Of a DNA stretch of 64,000 nucleotides, positions 10,439 to 34,547 are shown piece by piece. Positions within the stretch are counted from its first letter, which is position 1, and every line of letters begins with the position of its first letter. The DNA lies in sequence record MZ475891.1; one strand, given 5' to 3'. Below the pieces are notes generated by a model. That model was given only the letters and a program-made list of their open reading frames with translations. It was not told where the DNA came from and did not search any database. The translations under genes were made by a program, and so were the position numbers.

Positions 10439-11025
10439 TGGATTTATCTTCTATCGGCTATGCAAACAAACCATTTCGCGTTATCCCTGTTACTTCTGGT
10501 AATATCGTAACTGATTTCATTGCCGGAAAGTTTCAGGTGATTGGCGTTGAGTGCAATGCTCGTGGTGCGTATGGCTCGCCGATTCAACAAAGCATTGCAC
10601 GCCGCTTCCCTGACGTGTTGCAGAAGATGAACGCGCTCGACTACGACCACCAGAACTTCATGGGCAGCACGTTGATGCATCCTGTGCAGACTCAGCACCG
10701 TCGTCGTTTGTTTGTCGCTAACATGTTCCTTGCACGCGGCTTTGGGTTAGGCCAGAATCGCACTCAAAGTGAAGGTCCGATTAATCGTTTCAGTGAGCGA
10801 CACTTGACGCAAGCCTTCGACAGTCTTGTTGATAGCTGTGCATCACTCAACATTAGTCTGGACCGCCAGATTGCTGTGCAGCGTTTCTACGGCGGTCTTG
10901 GTGGGGTATCTTGGGAAGAAGTATGTGAAGTGCTGGACGCTATTTGCGCCAAGCATAAATTCAACATGCTGGCTTATCTGCCTAAGAACTATAACTCTAA
11001 CTTTGTGCGGGGTTCTGCGCAATAA
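10438..11025 (+). CDS. Macro-domain-like protein (ADP-ribose processing)
   Basis: CNARGAYGSPIQQSIARRFP and RFYGGLGGVSWEEV resemble the two macrodomain signature loops. Confidence 0.62.
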   Translation: MDLSSIGYANKPFRVIPVTSGNIVTDFIAGKFQVIGVECNARGAYGSPIQQSIARRFPDVLQKMNALDYDHQNFMGSTLMHPVQTQHRRRLFVANMFLARGFGLGQNRTQSEGPINRFSERHLTQAFDSLVDSCASLNISLDRQIAVQRFYGGLGGVSWEEVCEVLDAICAKHKFNMLAYLPKNYNSNFVRGSAQ

Positions 11026-11040
11026 CTCTGGGGTGTATTG

Positions 11041-11373
11041 ATGAATACAATACGCGGTTTTGATTGGCTTTTTTATGAGGATGGCACCGACAGTGGCCAA
11101 CACTCTGTTTTAAATATCGTCTGTGAACCACAGACTAAATCAATGCAGGTAGAAGTTCGAAAGGGATGCGCCGCGCCTGTAATTCAAGCAATTCAGGAAA
11201 ATGAAATCCTGTATGCTCAGACCGATGAAGGACTTTATCGAGTTCGTTATCGTTGTTCGTTTAAGCATCTTGCAGCGAACGCATTTCCTCCAGAGATGAC
11301 AGTGATCAAGTTGAAGTTGCTTGCACTTGACTTTCTTCCGGGCGTTACTACGCACGATAAACCTTTGGACTAA
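11041..11373 (+). CDS. Hypothetical protein
   Basis: 110-aa ORF in a packed operon. Confidence 0.6.
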   Translation: MNTIRGFDWLFYEDGTDSGQHSVLNIVCEPQTKSMQVEVRKGCAAPVIQAIQENEILYAQTDEGLYRVRYRCSFKHLAANAFPPEMTVIKLKLLALDFLPGVTTHDKPLD

Positions 11374-11378
11374 CCGCC

Positions 11379-12101
11379 ATGATTACAGCGAAACACATTG
11401 AAAGCCGTTTAAGAACAATAGACTATACCAAGCCTAATCCTGATCGGGAAATGCTTGTGGCGCTTGTGTCTGATGGACGTTCTCGTATTTTGAAGACAGC
11501 ACAGATCGATGGTCTGTGTCCGCTGTCTGATAAGTATTTTGAGTTCTGCCTCAGCCAGGTCGGCTCTTTCTGCACGGCAGGTTACAACGCTGTGGAGATT
11601 GCAATGTCTATCGGTGTTCAGCCTATCTATGTCGCAGCGCACATCCATCTGCATGGCTGCGATTGGGCACACAGACTTTTAGGCTTGAAGCGATTTGCTG
11701 CGCTTGCCCGTGGTCCGCACACTGTGTGGTCATCAGGTGAAGCGTGGTTCGCTTTGGGTGAATGCCAGCGTCGCTCTAAGCTGCACTATGGCACTTCAAG
11801 CGGGCAGGAAGCACTGCGCAAAGCAATCCAAAAAGCAGAGATGCCTTATGTGCTTGCTGCCGCTGTCACACATCCCCATCGTCTCATGAGCATTCTCCGT
11901 CCGCGTGATGGTCTGTTGTATCGTGACCCTCGCATTGAGAAGACGCTGAAACAACGTGAGAAAGCCGCTGCTGATGCAAAGGCGGAAGGCCGTTCTGTGC
12001 TAACGACTGAGAAGCGTAGCGAGTACGGCGACATGGGCAAGTTGTTTAACGGTCATCTGTCGCGTGCTGACAAGACAGGTAACCCTCGCGTAACTGAATA
12101 A
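11379..12101 (+). CDS. Hypothetical protein
   Basis: 240-aa ORF. Confidence 0.7.
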   Translation: MITAKHIESRLRTIDYTKPNPDREMLVALVSDGRSRILKTAQIDGLCPLSDKYFEFCLSQVGSFCTAGYNAVEIAMSIGVQPIYVAAHIHLHGCDWAHRLLGLKRFAALARGPHTVWSSGEAWFALGECQRRSKLHYGTSSGQEALRKAIQKAEMPYVLAAAVTHPHRLMSILRPRDGLLYRDPRIEKTLKQREKAAADAKAEGRSVLTTEKRSEYGDMGKLFNGHLSRADKTGNPRVTE

Positions 12102-12111
12102 GGAACGTATC

Positions 12112-12504
12112 GTGGACAAGAATGAAATCACGTTGTTGATCAATAGTCTTAACGGTAACCCAAAGAAGCCTTCTGACTATAACGATCTTCTGGGTAAGAC
12201 CGCAGGCGCCTTAGCCAAGTCTGAACAGAACATTGCGTTTCTGGTGAACAGCGATTTTGTTCATGAGAACATGCTACGTCTCGGTCGTGAAGAGGTAGCC
12301 CTCGATTGGTGGGAACCGTCTGAAACTCTCGACCAGTTATCGAAAGGCCTGCTCGGTAAGATTCACGACGTGCCTGTGTACGGTAACTGGTTCTATGTTA
12401 AGCCTGGCGATATTCCTAAGAAAGGACAGCCGCCACGCTTTGGCCTGTATCGTATCGATACTAAAGAGATCTTCCCGTTAAGCCCTGATTTGTTCTGTGC
12501 TTAA
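12112..12504 (+). CDS. Hypothetical protein, paralog of 12539-12919
   Basis: N-terminus MDKNEITLLINSLNGN; GTG start with AGGA RBS. Confidence 0.75.
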   Translation: MDKNEITLLINSLNGNPKKPSDYNDLLGKTAGALAKSEQNIAFLVNSDFVHENMLRLGREEVALDWWEPSETLDQLSKGLLGKIHDVPVYGNWFYVKPGDIPKKGQPPRFGLYRIDTKEIFPLSPDLFCA

Positions 12505-12538
12505 TTCATCTTAATCTGACCATCTAAAGGAATGTATC

Positions 12539-12919
12539 GTGGACAAGAATGAAATCACGCTTCTGATTGACAGTCTGAACGGCAATCGCAATTTCCCAAT
12601 CGATCCAGAAGCTGCAATAGGCATGACCCTTGAACAGTTCATCAAAACCAATGGGAACTTTGTGTTTCTCATGAATGATGCGCTCGTCCGTGACATGGTA
12701 AGTAAGCAGCATGAGTACGATCCAAACTTCGTACCAGCTACTACTCTCGACGAAATCAACAACGGTCTTATGGGAACTTTCCACGGCGTCAATGTGTACA
12801 GCACTTGGGTGTATCGTGCTCCTGGGGATCTGCCTGCGGAAGCGAAGCCTCGTTTCGGTATGTATCGCGCCGACCTAAAACAAATCTTCCCGTTGACTAA
12901 ACATTTTATCGTAAAGTAA
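12539..12919 (+). CDS. Hypothetical protein, paralog of 12112-12504
   Basis: N-terminus MDKNEITLLIDSLNGN; shared PRFG.YR.D.K.IFPL C-terminus. Confidence 0.75.
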   Translation: MDKNEITLLIDSLNGNRNFPIDPEAAIGMTLEQFIKTNGNFVFLMNDALVRDMVSKQHEYDPNFVPATTLDEINNGLMGTFHGVNVYSTWVYRAPGDLPAEAKPRFGMYRADLKQIFPLTKHFIVK

Positions 12920-12970
12920 AACTGTTTACGGTAATTTCTGAAGGTCAATCAGAATAACGGAATCCTCATC

Positions 12971-13741
12971 ATGAGCAATATCGATACCACAATGCCTGAA
13001 GGCAAATGGGAGTTCAACGAGTCGGTTGCTTGCGTGTTTGATAACATGCTGCAAAACTCCATCCCATCTTATGCCCGTATGCGTGACCTGACGTATCGTC
13101 TGGGTCGTCGCTTCGTAACCCCGGGTTCAGCTATCGTTGATCTCGGTGCTTCACTCGGCCGAGCTATCGAGCCGTTTGCAAAAGAGTTCGGCAAGTATGA
13201 CTACCATCATGCTGCTGACGCTCCTGGCGAAGACTACGAAACAGGCAATCACTATAGCCTGTACGAAGTAGCGCCTGCGATGCGTGAACGTCTGGTGCAG
13301 AATGAAGTGCTCAACTCAGTGAATGCCAAACTGGAAAGTGAATCGCTGGTCGATGCAGACACGTTTATGTTTGATGGGCAAGTGCATTGCTCGCTGATTC
13401 TGAGTGTACTGACGCTCCAGTTCACGCCGATTGAACATCGTCAACACATTCTGGAAAACGTGTACAACTCACTGCAACCAGGCGGCGCATTCATCCTCGT
13501 TGAGAAGGTGTTAGGCGATAACAACTATCTCGACAAAATGCTGGTGGACACCTACTACCAGATGAAAGGCGGTAACGGTTACAGCGCCGAGTCGATTGCG
13601 ACTAAACGTAAGTCACTGGAAGGCGTACTCGTTCCTGTTAAAGCAGCGTGGAACGAAGAACTGTTGCGTAAAGCAGGCTTCGGTCAGGTAGAAAGTTTCT
13701 ATCGCGACCTGAACTTCGCAGGATGGATTGCTATTAAGTAA
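12971..13741 (+). CDS. cmoA: CmoA-like carboxy-S-adenosylmethionine synthase
   Basis: WEFNESVACVFDNM..SIPSY, DLGASLG, TLQF, LQPGGAFILVEK, KGGNGYS..I.TKRKSLE and AGF..V..F...NF all align with CmoA, including the KR Arg. Confidence 0.85.
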   Translation: MSNIDTTMPEGKWEFNESVACVFDNMLQNSIPSYARMRDLTYRLGRRFVTPGSAIVDLGASLGRAIEPFAKEFGKYDYHHAADAPGEDYETGNHYSLYEVAPAMRERLVQNEVLNSVNAKLESESLVDADTFMFDGQVHCSLILSVLTLQFTPIEHRQHILENVYNSLQPGGAFILVEKVLGDNNYLDKMLVDTYYQMKGGNGYSAESIATKRKSLEGVLVPVKAAWNEELLRKAGFGQVESFYRDLNFAGWIAIK

Positions 13742-13750
13742 GGAAATACT

Positions 13751-15013
13751 ATGAAAGTAAACGGGCGTATCTTAGCTATCGTCCCACACAAGACAATGCA
13801 AGACCGTACCAAGTCGGGTGTGGGTTCATACATTGATGGGCTAGAGGCCTACGGCTTCTGCGACTTTATCACAGACGGAGAGAATAGCTCCGTTACGAAA
13901 AGTCAGTGGTTCACTTATGGTGACACTACTCTCAGTGACGGTTATAAGATAGGGCATATCCAGAGCGAGTTGCTGATTGCACTTGAGCGTCTGCCTTACC
14001 GTGCGATTATTTGCAGCACGTATGAGGCGATTGAAGCCTGCGTGTCTCTAGGTCTGCCGAAGATTATGCCCGTTTACTATCGCACGCACAACAGCTTTTT
14101 GCTCACACAAGATCTCAAGGGTCTTGGTGCAGAGAAGATCCACCGTGCGTTGTTACAAGCGAAAGTCACAGGGCTGCGCATCCTTGCTAACTGTGATTCG
14201 ACTGCGATCAATCTTGCTGAGCGCTATAAGACGCCAGCGCACGTTGCCTACAACTCGTTCTCAGTGCCTGACTACAACCCACCAGCTAAACGTGTTCCAC
14301 AGTTGTTGATTATCTGTCGCTATGAGAAGGTCAAGCGCACGTTGTTTGCTGCGCGTATTGCTGCTGCATCAGGACTACCCGTTCGTGTTATGACAGGCAG
14401 TGATCGTCAAGCACGCAATTGGGAGAAAGAGCTGGCTGAGGCGGGCGTCAAAGAGTATACGGTCGTCAGTGGCCTTAGCGGCAAACAGAAACTCGAATTT
14501 ATAGGCGCTTGCACCGTAGCCCTTTCTACTGCGAGCGTTGAATCATTTGCTAATGGTGTGCGTGAGTCCATACCTTACTGCCCTACCTTTATCGTGCAGA
14601 CATCCAAGTACGATTGGGCTAAGGACTATACGCGCTTCTGTACCGCCGACAAGCATGTTCATATCAGAACTGTTGATCGCGTATCGGACCAAGCCGTAGC
14701 TGAAATCGGAAGTGAGATAGCGCAAACAGCTACCACTCGTTATCTGACAGGACCTCAGCGTAAGCAGCTACTGACTGCTTGGGCAAAGCAAGTTGATCGT
14801 GGTTGGTCCGACTTTGTTCAGAAGGCTGTTGTTGACGATGACGGCAAGCCGCTGCGCACCGAGCTGTATCAAGAACTGATCGACAAGTCAGAGATCGATT
14901 GGTCACAAACGCCCACGCTGATGCGTACTGTAAATGCGTTACATAAATGCCACGCTCGTTTGGGCCTGACATTTGATGGCACTAAAATCAAATATAAGAG
15001 GAAGCGCAAATGA
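13751..15013 (+). CDS. GT-B fold glycosyltransferase-like protein
   Basis: C-terminal domain CRYEKVKR...; EX7E motif ESFANGVRE. Confidence 0.65.
   Translation: MKVNGRILAIVPHKTMQDRTKSGVGSYIDGLEAYGFCDFITDGENSSVTKSQWFTYGDTTLSDGYKIGHIQSELLIALERLPYRAIICSTYEAIEACVSLGLPKIMPVYYRTHNSFLLTQDLKGLGAEKIHRALLQAKVTGLRILANCDSTAINLAERYKTPAHVAYNSFSVPDYNPPAKRVPQLLIICRYEKVKRTLFAARIAAASGLPVRVMTGSDRQARNWEKELAEAGVKEYTVVSGLSGKQKLEFIGACTVALSTASVESFANGVRESIPYCPTFIVQTSKYDWAKDYTRFCTADKHVHIRTVDRVSDQAVAEIGSEIAQTATTRYLTGPQRKQLLTAWAKQVDRGWSDFVQKAVVDDDGKPLRTELYQELIDKSEIDWSQTPTLMRTVNALHKCHARLGLTFDGTKIKYKRKRK
14928..14935 (+). promoter_or_regulatory. CTGTAAAT motif (putative phage promoter)
   Basis: 74 nt upstream of the 15010 start. 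Confidence 0.45.
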
Positions 15014-16086
15014 GTGTTATCGGTGATATTTATAACATCCCACAACCTTTCGCAATGTATGTCGGGAATTGTGAGACGCGTGCTCAAGCCAAAGTTGCTG
15101 CGGGCACAATCGAGTGGGCGCCAGAGAAAGTGTGCTGCACCGTAGATGATGGTAACAACCTGTTCCCTAACGTACCTTCAATCAACCCTGCTGACGTGCA
15201 TAAGACAGATGCAGAAACTTTAGTGATTGGCTGTGCACCTTTCGGCGGCCGCATTGACGAGCACATGGACAAAGCTATTCGTAGCGCTATCTATCGTGGA
15301 CGCAACATCGCTGCTGCTATGCATACGCGCCTGGCGGATAATCCTGAATACGTTGAGCTGGCTGATCGCTACAACGTCAAGCTGTATGACTTCCGCCATC
15401 GTCCTGATGCGTACCCACTCGGTACTGGTGAGAAGCGTAGCGGTCTGCGTCTGTTAACTGTCGGTACTGATAGCTCATGCGGTAAGAAGTTTACCACGCT
15501 GTCTCTGTATCGTGAACTCAAAGCTATTCATGAAGCCACTACGTTCTGCTCTACTGGCCAGACGGGTTTCTTGATTAGCGGTTGCGGTATCAACAACGAC
15601 ACGATTGTTGCCGACTTCCTTGCTGGTGCCGCTGAATCACTTTCGCCTGATGGTCCTGCTGATCATGTTTATCTGATTGAGGGTCAAGGCGCTATCACGC
15701 ACCCAGCATACACAGGCGGCAGTATGAGTCTGATTGCTGGCTCGCAGCCTGATCATCTCATCCTGTGTCACGCATGGAACCGTCAGAATCAGTTGGGCGT
15801 TAAGCGTAAGCCTGACCTTGATTTTGAGATGCGTGCTAACATTGAAGCGGCACGTATTCACGGTCTCAACCCGACTTACATCGGTATCAGCATTAACTTC
15901 TCTGAGTGCAACCTCACCGCCGATGAGCAAGATAAAATCCTGTACCAACTCGCATCCACGTATGAGATTCCCGTGTTCGACCCCTCACAGGACACTTCTG
16001 TGTTGCGTGACCTCGCTCGTATGTTAGCAACTAAAGCCAAAGCAAGGAGCCTCGATGGCCAAGCATCCCCTACGCAAGCTGTTTGA
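15010..16086 (+). CDS. DUF1611 family P-loop protein (DgcN-like N-acetyltransferase family)
   Basis: VGTDSSCGKKFT, STGQTG, DFLAGAAE, IEGQGAITHPAY, GSQPDHLILCH. Confidence 0.8.
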   Translation: MSVIGDIYNIPQPFAMYVGNCETRAQAKVAAGTIEWAPEKVCCTVDDGNNLFPNVPSINPADVHKTDAETLVIGCAPFGGRIDEHMDKAIRSAIYRGRNIAAAMHTRLADNPEYVELADRYNVKLYDFRHRPDAYPLGTGEKRSGLRLLTVGTDSSCGKKFTTLSLYRELKAIHEATTFCSTGQTGFLISGCGINNDTIVADFLAGAAESLSPDGPADHVYLIEGQGAITHPAYTGGSMSLIAGSQPDHLILCHAWNRQNQLGVKRKPDLDFEMRANIEAARIHGLNPTYIGISINFSECNLTADEQDKILYQLASTYEIPVFDPSQDTSVLRDLARMLATKAKARSLDGQASPTQAV

Positions 16087-16930
16087 ACAGCATGTGAAAA
16101 AAGAAGTGAAAGCAGACAAGGTAGCTGTACTGCTTTCATCTGGCCTCGATGGTTTGGTTGGCGCATTAGCTGCACACGACCTGGGCAAGAAGGTACATGC
16201 CTTCACATTCCAAATGGGTGACAACCCTAGCTTTGACAGTCGCCACGCACAGATTGTTGCGCAGAAGATGGGTTGGGAGTTCACGCTTGTTAAAGTTCCC
16301 ACCAGCGTGTCTGCTATCGCATTAGCATGGCGCGTGTTGCACTCCAAATATCGCTGCATCAAGAAGCGTGACTATGAGTGTGCGTACCCTATGGTCTATT
16401 GCTACAAGGCAATCAAAGACGCTGGGTATAAGTATGTGCTAAGCGGGCTGGTGGCTGATGGTTACTTCCTGTATAACCGCAACACGCACATTCAGAAAAT
16501 CAGCGGGCCACACTCTGACGCTCAGAAGTATCATGAGTTCCGTACTCAATACTTTAGTCCGTGGCTTAAACACGGTAAGAAGTCTCTGGGCGTTGACGGG
16601 TACAACCCGAGCGGTATGTTGCAGCATGAAATGTTGTGCGATAACTTCGGCCTGATTCACGTTAACCCGTGGATGCAGAACAAGGTGTTTGACTACTTCA
16701 TCAAATACACTTGGCAGGAGCTGAATCAGCCTAAGCAGAAGATGCCACTAACCGAAGCGTGGGCAGAACACATTGCTCTTGTTGGTCATCGCCCACACAG
16801 GGGCTATCAGACAGAAGCCAAAGTGCCTGAATACTTTGAGCATCTGATCGATAACCCTGAGATTAACTTTAACGGGCGCAAGCGCATCATGGACGTGGCA
16901 CGCGACTGGTCCAAACGAGAGCCTGAATAA
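16055..16930 (+). CDS. ATP-dependent amide ligase (asparagine-synthetase C-terminal domain only)
   Basis: PP-loop LLSSGLDG and VLSGLVADGYF (cf. VLSGEGADELF); no N-terminal glutaminase domain. Confidence 0.72.
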   Translation: MAKHPLRKLFEQHVKKEVKADKVAVLLSSGLDGLVGALAAHDLGKKVHAFTFQMGDNPSFDSRHAQIVAQKMGWEFTLVKVPTSVSAIALAWRVLHSKYRCIKKRDYECAYPMVYCYKAIKDAGYKYVLSGLVADGYFLYNRNTHIQKISGPHSDAQKYHEFRTQYFSPWLKHGKKSLGVDGYNPSGMLQHEMLCDNFGLIHVNPWMQNKVFDYFIKYTWQELNQPKQKMPLTEAWAEHIALVGHRPHRGYQTEAKVPEYFEHLIDNPEINFNGRKRIMDVARDWSKREPE

Positions 16931-17185
16931 ATGCATCCTGTTATCACAGACTTTCTTGGTCCTATCGTTAAGCGGCTGGGCTTATTCACTGCTATATTCG
17001 GTTTTGTCGGCGTGCTGCTGTCTGTGATCGCAGTGCTTGTGTGCCGCCCAGAAGTCCTTCAATACGAATACGATACTGTAAATAGACTTCGTACTGAGGG
17101 TATTGTATTCTTGGGTAAAGGCGTTCTTATTTACATCGTAGGCGAGATACTTGAAGGCACGTTCAAGTGGAGAAAAGATGATTAA
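16931..17185 (+). CDS. Small membrane protein
   Basis: Two hydrophobic segments. Confidence 0.6.
   Translation: MHPVITDFLGPIVKRLGLFTAIFGFVGVLLSVIAVLVCRPEVLQYEYDTVNRLRTEGIVFLGKGVLIYIVGEILEGTFKWRKDD
17076..17083 (+). promoter_or_regulatory. CTGTAAAT motif (putative phage promoter)
   Basis: 94 nt upstream of the 17178 start. Confidence 0.45.
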
Positions 17186-17441
17186 CAAATTCGTGATGAA
17201 GAAGACTCCGACCATTGAAGCCTGTCAGTGGAATGGAGAGAACAAGGAAGAGATTGAAGCCTTCCTTGGCGATAGCGGATTCGTTGTTGGACGTTACGTG
17301 CAGATTGGTGTTCTGGATAAATACCAGAAGCCAACTATTGCTAACGTAAGCGTAGGCAACTATGTGATCAAGCGCGACGATGGTAAGTTCTATGCCATTA
17401 CTGCGCAAGATCTGTTTGAGAATTATGTATTAGCAGATTGA
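17178..17441 (+). CDS. Conserved phage hypothetical protein (EA.QW...G.YVIK...FE..Y type)
   Basis: IEACQWNG, VGNYVIKRDDGKFY and LFENY pattern is common in phages; GGAG RBS. Confidence 0.7.
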   Translation: MINKFVMKKTPTIEACQWNGENKEEIEAFLGDSGFVVGRYVQIGVLDKYQKPTIANVSVGNYVIKRDDGKFYAITAQDLFENYVLAD

Positions 17442-17448
17442 GGCCATA

Positions 17449-17901
17449 ATGAATCTGTTTTCTATTTTAAAACAGCAAGTGAAGAAATCCCTGACGACCG
17501 AAGCAACGCTTGAGCCAGAAGTGCGCAAACACTTTGACTGGCGTTTCAGTGTTGACGTCAAGGGCATGATGTACATTGTAGGCAAGACAGGCGCTAACAC
17601 CTGCTTCTATCTTGAGCCAGGTCACGTTGAGCCTACTGCCTGCTATCCTGATGAACTGCTTGCGAAGATTGATAGCTGGGGCGCTGCGAAGTACGTGTCC
17701 TACGCTGTCTACTTCAAGAAGTTCAGTAGCCCTGTAGCTGAGAACATCAAGACGCTTGAGCAGGCCAAGACAGGCAAGCCTAAAGCGTTTAAGAAAGGCT
17801 ACTTTATCTGTGGCGTAACACCGAAAGGTAAGCGCGTCAAACTGTGTCGTCTGCACAACAGCCTAAGCGGTATGCAGTGGGTTGATGTAGACCAGAAGTA
17901 A
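17449..17901 (+). CDS. Hypothetical protein
   Basis: 150-aa ORF with GAGG RBS. Confidence 0.7.
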   Translation: MNLFSILKQQVKKSLTTEATLEPEVRKHFDWRFSVDVKGMMYIVGKTGANTCFYLEPGHVEPTACYPDELLAKIDSWGAAKYVSYAVYFKKFSSPVAENIKTLEQAKTGKPKAFKKGYFICGVTPKGKRVKLCRLHNSLSGMQWVDVDQK

Positions 17902-17915
17902 ACCAAGGAGCTTAT

Positions 17916-18236
17916 ATGATTAGCGACATTGACATTGGCCATTATTATTGTTCTGCGAGCGGTATACCGTTTCGCGTAAAAGAACGTGCAGCACACGGAC
18001 AAGATTGTTCTCTGTCGATGATCGTATTTGAGAACGTGGAGGCAACTAAGGATTACCCTGTTGGTCAAACTTGGGTGCTTCCAGAATCTCTGTTCGTGAA
18101 ACAGTATTCCGAATTTACGGAAGGAAAGTATCATGAACGAAACAACGCTCTTAGAGCATCTGAAAACAAGACACTGGCAACCAGAGAAGCATTTCGGGTG
18201 GCTTTCGCCGAAGACCCTGACAGTGCCACTGTATAG
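17916..18236 (+). CDS. Hypothetical protein, DUF1653-like
   Basis: G.Y...SG..FRV...A.H...MIVF...WVLP...F pattern; AAGGAG RBS. Confidence 0.55.
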   Translation: MISDIDIGHYYCSASGIPFRVKERAAHGQDCSLSMIVFENVEATKDYPVGQTWVLPESLFVKQYSEFTEGKYHERNNALRASENKTLATREAFRVAFAEDPDSATV

Positions 18237-19557: not shown

Positions 19558-19959
19558 ATGAGACCTGAAAACATTTCACGCACCTATCGCGTCGGTCAGT
19601 CTGACCTGGAGAAAGCACACAATGTCTGCGGAGAGAACAATGTAACACTCTCAGATGTGGTGCGCAGATACATCGAAAGAATCGTACTGACTGAGGGTGA
19701 GTTCCTTATGAACGAGCGTAAGCACGTACCTGAGTCCCAACTGAATGTACGCCTGCCCTTTTATATTGCGCACTCCTTTGCATCTGTGTGTAAGTCTCGT
19801 GGTACGTTAGCCTCTAAAACCATTCTCAACTTTGTCAAGAATATTGCTCTTTCCGGGACTATCCCTGAGGAGTTAAAGTATGCTTCTGACGCAGAGTTGC
19901 GTGCCTATATTACCTCAGAGCGCTCTCGCCTCGATGCACTGGAAGCAAAACTCAAATGA
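19558..19959 (+). CDS. Tandem ribbon-helix-helix DNA-binding protein
   Basis: Two RHH-like units: SRTYRV...TLSDVVRRYIERI and LNVRLP...LASKTILNFVKNI. Confidence 0.6.
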   Translation: MRPENISRTYRVGQSDLEKAHNVCGENNVTLSDVVRRYIERIVLTEGEFLMNERKHVPESQLNVRLPFYIAHSFASVCKSRGTLASKTILNFVKNIALSGTIPEELKYASDAELRAYITSERSRLDALEAKLK

Positions 19960-20795
19960 TTCTAACTAGTCCCATTCGCTATCAGGGTAACAAGCGCACT
20001 CTGATGCCTCTTATTCTCGAACATGCGCCTGTGAAGGATTGCGTTCGCATGATAGACGCATTCGGTGGTAGTGGTACTGTTGCGCTTAACATGCCGCACA
20101 AGTTTCGCATCTACAATGAGCTGAGCACGCCTGTGTTTGAGATCGTCCAGTTGCTTGCGCATCAAGACCCGAAGAAAACATTGGGTCAGATTAAGCGTAT
20201 CGTCAAGCGTTTTTGTCTAACCAATAGCAGCCAAGACAACTACGACATGTTCCGTGCGTATGTGCAGAAGAAGCCTAGCCCTCTTCACCATTATATCGCA
20301 CACAGGCACGCACGCTCTAACATGCTGCGCTTCAACCAGAAAGGCATCTACAACGTGCCGTTCGGTGAGCGTGGTCTGATTGGTAAGTTCGATCAGCTTG
20401 AGCAGGAGCTGGTGCAGTTCCACGAGCGTATGCAGAACACGCACATCACCAACATGCGCTATAACCTGTTGCTCAAGTCCGTGTCAAAGCATATCGGACC
20501 GAACACGTTCATTTACTTTGATCCTCCGTATCTTGCTAGTGGTGCGATGCAGTACGGCAAGTGGACTGAGCACAACGAGCGCAACCTGCTGTCCGTGCTT
20601 GAGTATCTGAATCGTCAAGGCTGCCCGTGGATGTTGAGTAACGTTCTCCAGCATCGGCACCACACGAACGACTTGCTCAAGCGCTGGCTAAAGAAACACG
20701 CAACGACTGTCATCTATCCTGACAAGTCTTATTCAATGGCCAACTCTCATTCCGATAGTCACAGCACTATCGAGATTCTGGCAATGAACTACTGA
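19956..20795 (+). CDS. dam: DNA adenine methyltransferase (Dam family)
   Basis: SPIRYQGNK, DAFGGSGTV, YNVPFG, YFDPPY, WMLSN. Confidence 0.9.
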   Translation: MILTSPIRYQGNKRTLMPLILEHAPVKDCVRMIDAFGGSGTVALNMPHKFRIYNELSTPVFEIVQLLAHQDPKKTLGQIKRIVKRFCLTNSSQDNYDMFRAYVQKKPSPLHHYIAHRHARSNMLRFNQKGIYNVPFGERGLIGKFDQLEQELVQFHERMQNTHITNMRYNLLLKSVSKHIGPNTFIYFDPPYLASGAMQYGKWTEHNERNLLSVLEYLNRQGCPWMLSNVLQHRHHTNDLLKRWLKKHATTVIYPDKSYSMANSHSDSHSTIEILAMNY

Positions 20796-31711: not shown

Positions 31712-32410
31712 ATGGCAAAAATTGCTAAAGCAAAGGAAGGGAAAAAGAAAAGCAACCCTATGTTGATTGACCTGAAAAAGTTCAAGTCAGTTAAACAGCT
31801 TAAGGGTGCGAAGTACAACCCTCGTTTCATTACAGACAGCCGACTGAGAGCGCTCGAAGGTTCTTTGGGCAGCTTCGGTGATTTGTCTGGCGTGGTGTTC
31901 AACAACAGCGTGGACAGTGGCGTGCTGATCTCAGGCCACCAGCGCCTCAAGTCGATTGAGAAGTGGGACTCGCGCATTGAGATTCAGCAAACGTCTGACA
32001 AGTACGGCACGGTAGCGCTGGGTTATATCCATGCCACCAGCGCCAAAGGTAAAACGATCAGCATCCCACTGCGTATCGTTAACTGGTCAGATAAGAAAGT
32101 GGAGTTTGCTGCTAACATTGCCGCGAACGCCCACGGCGGTGAGTTCGATAACAAAAAGCTCGCGTCACTTGTCGAGAAGCTGGACCTGACTACAATCAAG
32201 CCAGCTCTTATCGGGCTTGACCCGTTAGAGATTCGCGGCCTGCAACAGACGCTGAGCAAACAAGCTATCGTCGAGCAGGAAAAGCGTGTTGGTAAAACAA
32301 CAGGCAAAATGAACGGCAGCACCGGCGAGTTCAAAGAGTACACGACTGATGAAGTTGGTACTGCGCTGACCTGCACCTGCCCACGTTGTGGCTTTAAGTT
32401 CGAGGGATAA
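31712..32410 (+). CDS. ParB/Srx-like N-terminal domain protein with C-terminal zinc ribbon
   Basis: KYNPR, LISGHQRLK, ANIAAN; CTCPRCGFKF. Confidence 0.78.
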   Translation: MAKIAKAKEGKKKSNPMLIDLKKFKSVKQLKGAKYNPRFITDSRLRALEGSLGSFGDLSGVVFNNSVDSGVLISGHQRLKSIEKWDSRIEIQQTSDKYGTVALGYIHATSAKGKTISIPLRIVNWSDKKVEFAANIAANAHGGEFDNKKLASLVEKLDLTTIKPALIGLDPLEIRGLQQTLSKQAIVEQEKRVGKTTGKMNGSTGEFKEYTTDEVGTALTCTCPRCGFKFEG

Positions 32411-32411
32411 C

Positions 32412-34547
32412 ATGATCATCAAGCCGCCTACAATGAAAGAGATTAATAAGCTGCCCAAGCCCTGGTCAGGTATGAGTTTCTTTGCAGGTTGCGGTGGTTC
32501 ATCTACCGGTCACAAGATGGCCGGCATTAACATCCTACTGAGCAACGAGTTCGTGGACGCGGCTCGTGAATCGTATGAAGCGAACCATCCAACAACCAAA
32601 GTGTTGCCCCACGATATTCGTCGTCTTGACCCGAAAAAGCTGCTTAGCTATTGCGGCCTGAGCCAAGGCGAACTGGACTTGCTTGACGGCAGTCCTCCGT
32701 GCTTCACCGAAGACACGTTCATTCATACTGACACTGGTATGAAGTTCATCACTGATATGCGCATCGGTGACTTCGCTATGACCTCTGTTGGTAAGTATCA
32801 TCCTGTGTATGACACGATGGTGCGTCCGTATGACGGTCAGATGCACAGAATTGAAACGCTGCTCGGTCAGAACAATGCAACACCTGAACACCCATTCTTT
32901 GTTCGTCGTCAGAGCGAAGAAGGTGGCGGGTACAGTGCGCCGTTCTGGTGTGACGCTAAAGATGTGCAGGAAGGTGACCTGTTAGGTACGCCTCGTGTTA
33001 CGCCTGACATGGGTGAAGCACACACGCACGAGATTATCTCGTCGTTGACCGCGCAGCTTGTGCGTTGGATTGCATTGCCTGAGTTCTGGTGGCTGATTGG
33101 ACACTGGTGCAATCGCGGTGCAATCGATAAGATTCGTGGTGTCGATGTTATTCAATTCACCTCGATGACAGCGATGGAAAACTCGCTGGTGGAACAAGCG
33201 TTCGACGTGCTCAAGTTAAGCAGCATCAACAGCGCTTCGTCCGACATGGGCGTTCATCGTAAGACCGTTCGTGTTGTTATGGACACAGACCTGTTGCTGT
33301 TCTTGCGTATGTTCATCGCACAGGGCAAGAAGTCTATGTCACGCCGTCTGCCTGGCATGATCTTCCATCTGGCTAAAGAGCTGAAACAGCAATTCATTCT
33401 CGGCTATCTGGGTCGTGATTACGTCACAGCAATGGGCGTTGGTCATGCGTTAGAGGCTGACTCAAAGCGCTTCCTCGTTGAGATGAATTACCTGTGCTGC
33501 TCTGCGTTCAACCGACCGCTGTTCGATGCAATGTTGTTCACTGACTTGCACTACGGCAGTCCGATGTTACCGCCGAGTCGCTTCATTACCAAAGAGCACA
33601 TCGGCTTCCTGTTCTTGCAAGAAGAGGTTAATTTCTTCTTCGAGTTCGAGCCGGAAGACCCGCATCTGTGGGTTGAAGTGATTGAGAACTTTACGCACCA
33701 TGAAACGTGCAACGTCTATAACTTCTCAGTCAGTGTTGATGAGACGTATGTTGCTAACGGCATGGTCGTGCATAACTGCAAAGGGTTCTCGACTGCTGGC
33801 GTGAAAGAAGACGGCTGGGGTAAAGAGGTTAAGTACAGCGGCAACAAGTATCAGCAAGTCGATGACCTGTTCGATCAGTATTGCCGTATGCTCAAGCACA
33901 TGCAGCCTAAAACGTTCACTGCGGAAAACGTTAGTGGCCTCGTTAAAGGTGCGTCGAAGGGTTACTTCATTGAAATCATGAAGACCTTTGATCAGCTGGG
34001 TTACTATGTGCGAGCACCGTTGCTTAATGCTGCGTGGCTTGGTGTGCCTCAGTCTCGTGAACGTATCATCTTTATGGGTGTGCGCAAAGACGTGGCGAAA
34101 GCACTCGGTTATAAAACTGCGTTGACTGCTGTGCCTGATGTAACACCTCAATCAAGCATGGCATTCCTTGCAGATGCATTGCCGAACATTCGTCGCTATA
34201 AAGGTACGGAGCGTGACATTATCAAGTATCTGCCTGCTGTTAACGGGCCGATGCCTACGATTACCGCCGCTGACGCTATCGCATACGAAACAGCACGCTT
34301 CTCCTCTGCTGGCTTCATTGAAGACGACAAAGGGCACAGACGCAAGCTGACGATTGATGAACTCAAAGTTGTATCAGGCATGCCTAGTGATTACGTGCTC
34401 ACAGGTAAGTTTGAAGAACAATGGGAACGTCTCGGTCGTGTGTGCGTACCTGCAATGACGTGTGCTGCGGCAAGCGCGTTGATACGCCATGTGCTTGAGC
34501 CTTACGCGAAGCTGCGTAAAAAGAAACCTGGGGATCGTTTTCGTTAA
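32412..34547 (+). CDS. DNA cytosine-C5 methyltransferase homolog, intein-containing (candidate carboxymethyltransferase)
   Basis: Motif I FFAGCGG, IV SPP/CKGFS (split), VI ENVSG, VIII QSRERI, IX RKLTIDE, X LGRVCVP; ATG 32412. Confidence 0.88.
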   Translation: MIIKPPTMKEINKLPKPWSGMSFFAGCGGSSTGHKMAGINILLSNEFVDAARESYEANHPTTKVLPHDIRRLDPKKLLSYCGLSQGELDLLDGSPPCFTEDTFIHTDTGMKFITDMRIGDFAMTSVGKYHPVYDTMVRPYDGQMHRIETLLGQNNATPEHPFFVRRQSEEGGGYSAPFWCDAKDVQEGDLLGTPRVTPDMGEAHTHEIISSLTAQLVRWIALPEFWWLIGHWCNRGAIDKIRGVDVIQFTSMTAMENSLVEQAFDVLKLSSINSASSDMGVHRKTVRVVMDTDLLLFLRMFIAQGKKSMSRRLPGMIFHLAKELKQQFILGYLGRDYVTAMGVGHALEADSKRFLVEMNYLCCSAFNRPLFDAMLFTDLHYGSPMLPPSRFITKEHIGFLFLQEEVNFFFEFEPEDPHLWVEVIENFTHHETCNVYNFSVSVDETYVANGMVVHNCKGFSTAGVKEDGWGKEVKYSGNKYQQVDDLFDQYCRMLKHMQPKTFTAENVSGLVKGASKGYFIEIMKTFDQLGYYVRAPLLNAAWLGVPQSRERIIFMGVRKDVAKALGYKTALTAVPDVTPQSSMAFLADALPNIRRYKGTERDIIKYLPAVNGPMPTITAADAIAYETARFSSAGFIEDDKGHRRKLTIDELKVVSGMPSDYVLTGKFEEQWERLGRVCVPAMTCAAASALIRHVLEPYAKLRKKKPGDRFR
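32700..33776 (+). mobile_element. Intein (359 aa) with degenerate LAGLIDADG-like region
   Basis: Starts CFTEDT, block B ATPEHPFFV, ends NFSV...VANGMVVHN, followed by Cys. Confidence 0.92.

Follow-up and report, generated by a model that had tools for sequence, protein, structure and literature searches.

In the present study, a 291-aa protein encoded by the Erwinia jumbo phage pEa_SNUABM_13 (record MZ475891.1; genome 264.7 kb) is described as what is very likely, judging from its relatives and its gene neighbourhood, a CmoY-type amide ligase acting on the phage's own 5cxmC DNA after replication. What was observed directly for this ligase is its homology and fold, the conservation of its motifs, its gene context and the purifying selection on it; its substrate would be 5cxmC in DNA, and its partners would take the roles proposed below. 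The principle of amide ligation to 5cxmC has already been published (PMC12783734), and neither the separate clade to which the present ligase belongs, nor its pairing with a DUF1611 gene, nor the racemase-like and glycosyltransferase companions of that pair are mentioned there. In the window, that is, the whole stretch of 64,000 nucleotides that was analysed, the following features are considered:

12971..13741, plus strand: CmoA homologue (predicted carboxy-SAM synthase), P0003, 256 aa; TIGR00740 E 7e-40; first gene of the operon
13751..15013, plus strand: GT4-like (GT-B) glycosyltransferase-like protein, P0002, 420 aa; optional operon member in relatives
15010..16086, plus strand: DgcN-like DUF1611 protein, P0004, 358 aa; invariant upstream partner, with a 32-nt overlap with the ligase start
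16044..16049, plus strand: perfect Shine-Dalgarno sequence AAGGAG, 5 nt before the ligase ATG and within the end of the DUF1611 gene
16055..16930, plus strand: predicted CmoY-family ATP-dependent (AMP-forming) amide ligase, P0001, 291 aa; AsnB-type synthetase domain only
16130..16153, plus strand: PP-loop region LLSSGLDG of the ligase, residues 26-33; variant SSGLDG of the canonical SGGxDS
16436..16468, plus strand: VLSGLVADGYF of the ligase, residues 128-138; corresponds to the nucleotide-binding segment SGEGSDE of AsnB
32388..34547, plus strand: CmoX homologue (predicted DNA cytosine C5-carboxymethyltransferase), P0006; SPPC motif and Arg684
32700-33776, plus strand: intein in CmoX, residues 105-463, interrupting SPPC at its catalytic Cys

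The ligase reading frame starts with ATG, and its product (QYW02980.1 in MZ475891.1) is annotated as a hypothetical protein. The last 32 nt of the preceding DUF1611 gene overlap the ligase start, and because the Shine-Dalgarno sequence is also located inside that gene end, translational coupling is possible. The spacing of the operon from CmoA to the ligase is tight (-32 to +9 nt), and a scan of positions 12400-17600 for promoters and terminators returned a number of sites not above chance. Comparison with the orthologue of Dickeya phage AD1 gave a dN/dS of approximately 0.04, at saturated dS; the ligase gene is real, conserved and under strong purifying selection, and it is the only gene with an Asn_synthase domain in the whole phage genome.

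The preliminary description had considered this protein a stand-alone asparagine-synthetase-type ligase without a glutaminase domain, and this view was confirmed by the domain and fold analyses, in which the model aligned to C-terminal synthetase domains only. The Pfam Asn_synthase domain was matched at residues 6-138 (E 6e-13, 49.6 bits, cut-off 21). A single-sequence search of the PDB gave no meaningful match, and a profile search of the PDB returned ASNS and AsnB. The AlphaFold model (pLDDT 94.7, pTM 0.91) aligned over residues 1-291 with residues 228-526 only of the human ASNS chain (Z 22.3), and the C-terminal synthetase domain was likewise the only part aligned in beta-lactam synthetase (residues 220-486, Z 22.2), in E. 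coli AsnB (207-506, Z 19.9) and in carbapenam synthetase, where it alone corresponded to the full ligase model. Foldseek E values against AsnB-fold structures were approximately 1e-9 to 3e-10, and the next fold group after the AsnB type followed at a Z of about 12. As modelled, the ligase is a synthetase (PP-loop) domain alone and leaves no space for a glutaminase domain; a GATase_7 domain is absent from the entire 264.7-kb phage genome.

Both motifs quoted in the preliminary description, LLSSGLDG and VLSGLVADGYF, were found at the residues listed above. Two residues of the PP-loop deviate from SGGxDS (G to S and S to G); in the ligase family Ser28, Gly30 and Asp32 are invariant and motif positions 2 and 6 vary, and Gly131, Ala134 and Asp135 of the second motif are invariant as well. 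The variant PP-loop is kept in the 19 clade members examined (17 from the alignment plus the AD1 and pEa_SNUABM_1 orthologues), down to 46% identity, and the ligase of phage PaBG carries SSGVDS. The conservation of this variant in the clade, together with SSGVDS in PaBG, suggests a tolerated variant rather than lost function, and by this sequence evidence the variant PP-loop is probably functional.

Known enzymes of this fold differ from the window ligase in several respects. AsnB and human ASNS (PDB 1ct9, 6gq3, 8sue) share with it the C-terminal synthetase fold (Z 20-22, 19% identity), the PP-loop and, presumably, acyl-adenylate chemistry; however, the phage enzyme lacks the N-terminal Cys1 Ntn glutaminase domain of AsnB, reaches 55.2 bits against a TIGR01536 cut-off of 267.1, and would use a modified base in DNA, instead of aspartate, as its acyl substrate. 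Beta-lactam and carbapenam synthetases (PDB 1mbz, 1q19) match the synthetase fold at equal Z (21-22) and are likewise AsnB scaffolds that employ a non-ammonia nitrogen nucleophile, but they keep a vestigial N-terminal domain and close an intramolecular amide (lactam) on small molecules.

The closest characterized homologue by far is SpCmoY (A0A514ABJ0) of Synechococcus phage S-B43, for which ATP-dependent ligation of glycine to 5cxmC in DNA was reported in December 2025 by Yang et al. in Nat Commun, with genomic and PCR DNA as substrates and likewise without a glutamine-hydrolysing domain (PMC12783734). The window ligase is 33% identical to SpCmoY across 275 of its 291 residues (E 3e-50), and a tblastn search of the S-B43 genome gave an E value of 5e-32; that the S-B43 gene is SpCmoY was checked by coordinates in the source data of PMC12783734. 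Each of the two consists of an AsnB-type synthetase domain standing alone, has a length of about 270-290 aa and lacks a glutaminase domain; both are encoded in phage genomes that also carry CmoA and CmoX, and 37 residues, including S28, G30, D32, G131, A134 and D135, are invariant in both ligase clades. In the phylogenetic tree, the window ligase and SpCmoY fall together, separated from the PaBG-type ligases, and the clade of the window ligase stands apart from SpCmoY with UFBoot/SH-aLRT support of 95/89. The PP-loop is SSGLDG (clade pattern S-S-G-L/M-D-G/S/A) as opposed to SGGVDS in SpCmoY, insertions of 4 aa and 13 aa are present, and the pI is 9.3 versus 5.8, with values uniformly basic across the clade (9.2-9.7). 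In addition, 19 clade-invariant residues, including the GHRPHRGYQTEAKVP segment, differ from the SGGVDS type, and these clade-specific substitutions hint at an amine pocket different from that of SpCmoY. Finally, ligases of the window type invariably have a DUF1611/DgcN-like gene as a partner, whereas S-B43 has none.

The pathway partners expected for such an enzyme are encoded by the same phage. A genome-wide PF00145 search located the CmoX homologue 15.5 kb downstream of the ligase. With the intein removed, GSPP is joined to C, and Arg684 corresponds to R350 of SpCmoX, the carboxy-SAM-binding Arg; this CmoX must undergo intein splicing to work. The preliminary description had also proposed that the ligase needs an external amine and that a carboxymethylated base supplies the carboxylate, and the homology to SpCmoY and the presence of both CmoA and CmoX argue for this proposal. 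The gene between CmoA and the DUF1611 gene was assigned as GT4-like from its homologues and from language-model features; when the PDB was searched with its profile, nothing beyond a weak match to a GT-B glucosyltransferase (E 0.013) was returned. Its candidacy as the carboxymethyltransferase was rejected, as it has no similarity to SpCmoX and no Pfam match.

The DUF1611 protein matches PDB 7xrj (E 3e-53), its closest PDB relative, named by its depositors a putative NAD-dependent epimerase/dehydratase, and the NCBIfam DgcN model (E 2e-86) over its full length, and it retains the GTDxSxGK P-loop. Unlike DgcN, a D-glutamate N-acetyltransferase, it is phage-encoded and tied by context to a DNA-modification operon, and, with a score of 290 bits against an equivalog cut-off of 480, it is a paralogue. 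The pairing is strict: the ligase clade lies directly behind the DgcN-like gene in 34 of 34 phage records and in all five metagenome contexts, and none of 18 records with other ligase types contained DUF1611 as well. Contiguous operons of CmoX, CmoA, DUF1611 and a ligase closely related to that of the window were observed in three independent metagenomic phage contigs (L010, L012 and L013). The pair is often accompanied by a gene for a PLP racemase-like protein and by one for a GT4-like glycosyltransferase; the former, with an Ala_racemase_N domain, is inserted between DUF1611 and ligase in L006, L010, L013, L015 and L026, and the pEa_SNUABM_13 phage itself has no racemase-like gene. An IMG/VR scan yielded 12 loci, for the most part from the same isolates. 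Remote phage homologues adjoin CmoA in all contexts fetched (S-B43, pEa_SNUABM_5, Yersinia fHe-Yen9-02 and PaBG), and the small genes located behind other types of ligase, in pEa_SNUABM_5, fHe-Yen9-02, PaBG and AD1, had no Pfam match. Among close relatives, CmoA is 77-83% identical, whereas the ligases are merely 22-25% identical and the partner genes are different. The literature on AD1, PaBG and the pEa_SNUABM phages contained no results on modification of their DNA or on its resistance to restriction.

Herein, we propose a pathway to describe how these proteins may act together. The phage CmoA would produce carboxy-SAM, and the spliced CmoX would place a carboxymethyl group on cytosine C5 to give 5cxmC. 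The ligase would then proceed by two-step adenylation, by analogy with SpCmoY and AsnB: the PP-loop (S28-S29-G30-L31-D32-G33) would bind ATP, the carboxylate of 5cxmC would be adenylated with release of PPi, and an external amine would attack the acyl-adenylate to yield 5-(N-substituted carbamoylmethyl)cytosine and AMP. Since there is no ammonia-generating glutaminase domain, the nucleophile would be a free amine; the likeliest candidate is an amino acid, reacting through its alpha-amino group. The clade-invariant residues and insertions that set the ligase apart from the glycine-specific SpCmoY, the DgcN-like neighbour and the frequent racemase-like gene suggest that this amine is probably not glycine. 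N-acylation of D-glutamate and similar D-amino acids is the activity of the DgcN family, and the amine may, going by the family names of the neighbours, be a D-amino acid. The DgcN-like protein, together with the GT4-like transferase where present, might join in or extend the modification. We tentatively extend this to a possible, though rather unlikely, two-enzyme module, in which the ligase clade and its DgcN-like partner would couple 5cxmC in DNA to a D-amino acid such as D-glutamate or D-alanine; this amino acid would be taken from the peptidoglycan pools of the host or be supplied, in relatives, by the co-encoded PLP racemase-like protein, and the product would be glycosylated further where the GT4-like gene is present.

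Other explanations have been considered for the same data. The ligase might be a small-molecule amide ligase that does not act directly on DNA and, with the DgcN-like enzyme and the glycosyltransferase, makes or amidates a soluble metabolite of the N-acyl-D-amino-acid or sugar-amino-acid kind. Small molecules are used by all of the AsnB-fold relatives AsnB, beta-lactam synthetase, carbapenam synthetase and TsnB9, the substrate of DgcN is free D-glutamate, and in contigs L006, L008 and L030 the DUF1611 and ligase genes have no CmoA or CmoX within 7-8 kb. However, these contigs are 87-224 kb long and CmoX lies 15.5 kb from the ligase in the window, and thus the absence of CmoA or CmoX within 8 kb means little; moreover, SpCmoY acts on DNA, CmoX and CmoA share an operon with the ligase in L010, L012 and L013, and the clade is uniformly basic, so that we regard this explanation as improbable. 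Amidation at the nucleotide level, on 5cxm-dCMP or 5cxm-dCTP before incorporation rather than in polymerised DNA, appears very improbable. Several phage hypermodification routes do begin with nucleotides, and dCMP or dCTP deaminase genes lie close to some homologues, but CmoX is a homologue of DNA C5-methyltransferases modifying duplex DNA, SpCmoY accepts genomic and PCR DNA, and no nucleotide-level carboxymethylase was found.

The native service of CmoA in tRNA cmo5U synthesis, and the label 'tRNA methyltransferase' given by PHROG and RefSeq to the neighbouring gene, might instead suggest that the target is tRNA of the host or the phage, with cmo5U34 amidated at its oxyacetic-acid group. With CmoB absent from the phage, a CmoX with the carboxy-SAM-binding Arg present and DNA as the substrate of the characterized homologue SpCmoY, there is hardly any likelihood of this. 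We give just as little credence to a role in 7-deazaguanine or cofactor metabolism, as a PP-loop enzyme resembling QueC or NAD synthetase, or to an inactive relic with a decayed PP-loop, despite the non-canonical motif and weak matches to QueC and NadE (E 4e-4 to 1e-3). The QueC model TIGR00364 scored 22.2 bits against a cut-off of 150.3 and was confined to residues 25-83, so that only about 60 residues at the start of the protein match, and no TGT or DpdA is encoded in the phage genome. The AsnB-type fold is matched at Z 22, compared with about 10-12 for PP-loop enzymes outside the AsnB type among the matches listed, NadE and LarE included, and a relic is at odds with a dN/dS of 0.04 and a variant motif conserved down to 46% identity.

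The CmoY-type reading extends the CmoA/CmoX/CmoY pathway of 2025 from cyanophages to jumbo phages of the plant pathogens Erwinia and Dickeya, some of which serve in fire-blight biocontrol. Because the principle has already been published, the value of the present findings lies in the variant chemistry and not in the concept. The amide ligase step is modular, in that CmoA is kept and the ligase and partner genes are swapped among close relatives, a pattern that is expected where phages compete in an arms race against restriction by their hosts. The strict DgcN-like pairing, and the frequency with which racemase-like and glycosyltransferase genes occur beside it, predict a more elaborate, still undescribed cytosine adduct and supply a defined four-gene set; if true, the D-amino-acid module would represent a D-aminoacyl, possibly glycosylated, cytosine hypermodification that has not been described so far.

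The ligase gene belongs to the 264.7 kb genome of the jumbo phage pEa_SNUABM_13 (MZ475891.1; host, Erwinia amylovora), in which it is annotated only as a hypothetical protein. Window bases 11000-18000 match this genome with 100% identity at unchanged positions, so that the window represents its first 64 kb. It and two pathway partners are located as follows.

16055-16930, plus strand: ligase, 291 aa
12971-13741: CmoA homologue, first gene of the operon (TIGR00740, E 7e-40; 28% identity to SpCmoA of Synechococcus phage S-B43)
32388-34547: open frame of a CmoX homologue, aligning with SpCmoX of S-B43 on either side of a 359-residue insertion

A perfect AAGGAG stands 5 nt before the ligase ATG, and the start overlaps the 3' end of the preceding gene by 32 nt. 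The motifs quoted in the preliminary description, LLSSGLDG (residues 26-33) and VLSGLVADGYF (residues 128-138), are present. Pfam Asn_synthase matched residues 6-138 over threshold, QueC and NAD synthase matches were weak and below threshold, and NCBIfam agreed with Pfam, with scores far under equivalog cut-offs. A confident AlphaFold2 model (pLDDT 94.7, pTM 0.91; 18 homologues as input) matched, over its full length, the C-terminal synthetase domain of each of the four enzymes tabulated below (Foldseek E 3e-10 to 1e-9), followed by a next fold group of LarE, NAD synthetase and argininosuccinate synthetase at Z 10-12 only.

Table. Structural matches to the ligase model
Human asparagine synthetase, chain residues 228-526: Z 22.3
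Beta-lactam synthetase: Z 22.2
Carbapenam synthetase: Z 21.4
E. coli AsnB, 207-506: Z 19.9

Neither a glutaminase (GATase_7) domain nor a second Asn_synthase gene was found in the phage genome, and the Pfam match, the superposition and the genome without GATase_7 bear out the early proposal of a stand-alone synthetase domain lacking a glutaminase. Against the Dickeya phage AD1 orthologue, dN was 0.093 with dS saturated, giving a dN/dS of about 0.04 that is approximate because of this saturation; DUF1611 and CmoA, the other two genes of the operon included in the comparison, gave higher ratios. The gene is confirmed as real, expressed-looking and strongly constrained, and as encoding a stand-alone synthetase domain.

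The closest functional precedent is found in phage S-B43, in which CmoA makes carboxy-SAM, the C5-methyltransferase homologue CmoX, with an SPPC motif and Arg350 replacing the usual motif-X Asn, yields 5-carboxymethylcytosine (5cxmC) in DNA, and CmoY, an asparagine-synthetase homologue without an amidase domain, ligates glycine to 5cxmC in an ATP-dependent manner (Yang et al., Nat Commun 2025, PMC12783734). A tblastn search of the S-B43 genome with the window ligase gave a match at 147774-148589, exactly the cmoY gene in the source data of that paper, with a pairwise identity of 33% over 275 residues (E 3e-50). The window gene resembles CmoY in homology, domain architecture, CmoA context and CmoX context, and its PP-loop departs from the CmoY consensus. 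Assessed as AsnB proper or as QueC, the protein qualified as neither.

The CmoX partner was recovered by a genome-wide search as a split PF00145 match (32472-32702 and 33777-34457) in one open frame, and its Arg684 aligns with SpCmoX R350. The 420-aa gene adjoining CmoA was ruled out as the methyltransferase, having no similarity to SpCmoX. The CmoX insertion carries Hint and intein splicing domains (Pfam); since it begins with a Cys directly behind GSPP and its last residues are HN, followed by Cys, it is an intein at the catalytic cysteine, its 359 residues (32700-33776) lying exactly at the Cys of SPPC. Because the intein-bearing protein cannot work until spliced, splicing may set the timing of DNA carboxymethylation or act as a gate on it. 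A ligase might instead serve a tRNA-cmo5U route or a 7-deazaguanine route; however, neither CmoB nor TGT/DpdA was found in the phage genome, which argues against the former and the latter, respectively.

The ligase concept itself was published in December 2025, and the window gene would be a variant of CmoY. That paper already noted additional clusters of ligases, distinct in their active-site residues, and makes no mention of DUF1611, inteins or Erwinia; no later literature on CmoY was found. A word-index search revealed 20 relatives at 99% to 35% identity, and the alignment with SpCmoY contained 37 invariant positions, including S28, G30 and D32 of the PP-loop, G131, A134 and D135. All 19 members examined of the clade around the window protein (17 in the alignment plus the AD1 and pEa_SNUABM_1 orthologues), to as low as 46% identity, carry S-S-G-[L/M]-D-[G/S/A], whereas the motif in SpCmoY and its closer relatives is SGG[V/I]DS. 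Two insertions, of 4 and 13 residues, also set the clade apart, as do 19 positions, most densely placed in the GHRPHRGYQTEAKVP segment, at which its invariant residue is different in the SGGVDS type. In the maximum-likelihood tree, the clade (support 95/89) is sister to SpCmoY plus a further homologue (P0026), and a third, more distant group comprises PaBG, pEa_SNUABM_5 and Yersinia fHe-Yen9-02, the deep branching order being uncertain because of long branches. As the variant PP-loop is kept under strong purifying selection and the PaBG ligase is independently SSGVDS, we regard it as probably a tolerated variant and not a sign of decay. The clade is uniformly basic (pI 9.2-9.7), in contrast to SpCmoY (5.8). 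The GT4-like protein (13751-15013; pI 9.2) is likewise basic, and CmoA and DUF1611 are acidic; basic GT4-like and ligase proteins would be compatible with both acting directly on DNA.

The window operon runs CmoA, GT4-like, DUF1611 and ligase, with neighbouring genes overlapping by up to 32 nt or lying up to 9 nt apart.

Table. Gene order in related loci (L010, L012 and L013, metagenomic contigs)
Dickeya phage AD1: CmoA, DUF1611, ligase
Window: CmoA, GT, DUF1611, ligase
pEa_SNUABM_1 and L026: CmoA, GT, DUF1611, racemase-like, ligase
L010: CmoX, CmoA, GT, DUF1611, racemase-like, ligase
L012: CmoX, DUF1611, ligase, CmoA
L013: CmoX, GT, DUF1611, racemase-like, ligase, CmoA

A DUF1611 gene is present in exactly the 34 phage records with this ligase type at at least 80% identity and in none of 18 with other ligase types, counts inflated by closely related genomes and duplicate RefSeq/GenBank records. 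More independent evidence for the pairing comes from five metagenomic contexts (ligases 46-70% identical), in all of which DUF1611 lies immediately upstream; a gene with an Ala_racemase_N domain intervenes in three (L006, L010 and L013), and no racemase-like gene was found in the window phage. In two IMG/VR contigs, a ligase with the canonical PP-loop follows a tandem pair of DUF1611 genes; the partnership is therefore older than the clade. On these uncultured viral contigs (L030:4695-7918; also L029), the tandem paralogues and SGGIDS ligase adjoin a sigma factor, a dCTP deaminase and a thymidylate synthase gene, the last followed by a GIY-YIG/NUMOD3 homing endonuclease, with no CmoA or CmoX within 7 kb of the cluster.

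Of the 34 records, only 21 contain the GT-like gene. Its putative GT4-like assignment rests on near-threshold Glycos_transf_1 matches in homologues 37-47% identical, an E-x7-E-like VESF...E segment, a weak match in a PDB profile search, and language-model neighbours. In relatives with a CmoA 77-83% identical to that of the window, the ligases are only 22-25% identical and DUF1611 is missing. The ligase module was swapped while CmoA stayed conserved; such loci are L017:3030-4723 (pEa_SNUABM_5) and L018:2525-4199 (Yersinia phage fHe-Yen9-02), compared with window 12971-16930. Just upstream of CmoA, a 126-aa ORF (12539-12919) without a family match seems absent from the closest relatives, e.g. 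pEa_SNUABM_7 (alignment in two pieces, 95% covered), suggesting a recent indel. A Dam-like D12-class N6-adenine DNA methyltransferase with a DPPY motif lies 3 kb downstream of the ligase (19956-20795), so the phage DNA probably carries methylated adenine in addition to hypermodified cytosine.

Herein, we propose, reasoning from SpCmoY and other AsnB-superfamily homologues, that the PP-loop would bind ATP, that the ligase would adenylate the 5cxmC carboxylate, and that an amine would attack the acyl-adenylate, with loss of AMP. ATP-dependent amide ligation is, in our analysis, quite probably the reaction class, and 5cxmC in duplex phage DNA the substrate. A glutaminase domain is lacking both from the enzyme and from all other genes of the phage, so that the nucleophile is more likely a free amine than ammonia released from glutamine. 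The window DUF1611 protein (P0004) is homologous over its entire length to PDB 7xrj (E 3e-53) and matches NCBIfam DgcN at E 2e-86, under the equivalog cut-off; that family is named an N-acetyltransferase, and dgcN is described in literature on the conversion of D-glutamate, an acidic D-amino acid, as the key gene of the pathway. DgcN reportedly N-acetylates D-glutamate with acetyl-CoA. A D-amino acid is an attractive candidate for the amine in view of the residues and insertions specific to the clade, its invariable DgcN-like partner and the PLP racemase-like gene that often accompanies the pair, although we consider it unlikely, as the idea comes from the family names of neighbours and no racemase-like gene is encoded by the window phage. 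An N-(cytosin-5-yl-acetyl)-D-amino acid is a chemical analogue of the N-acetyl-D-glutamate product of DgcN, and the DgcN-like protein may supply the amine, pass on the activated acyl group, or add another acyl unit to the attached group.
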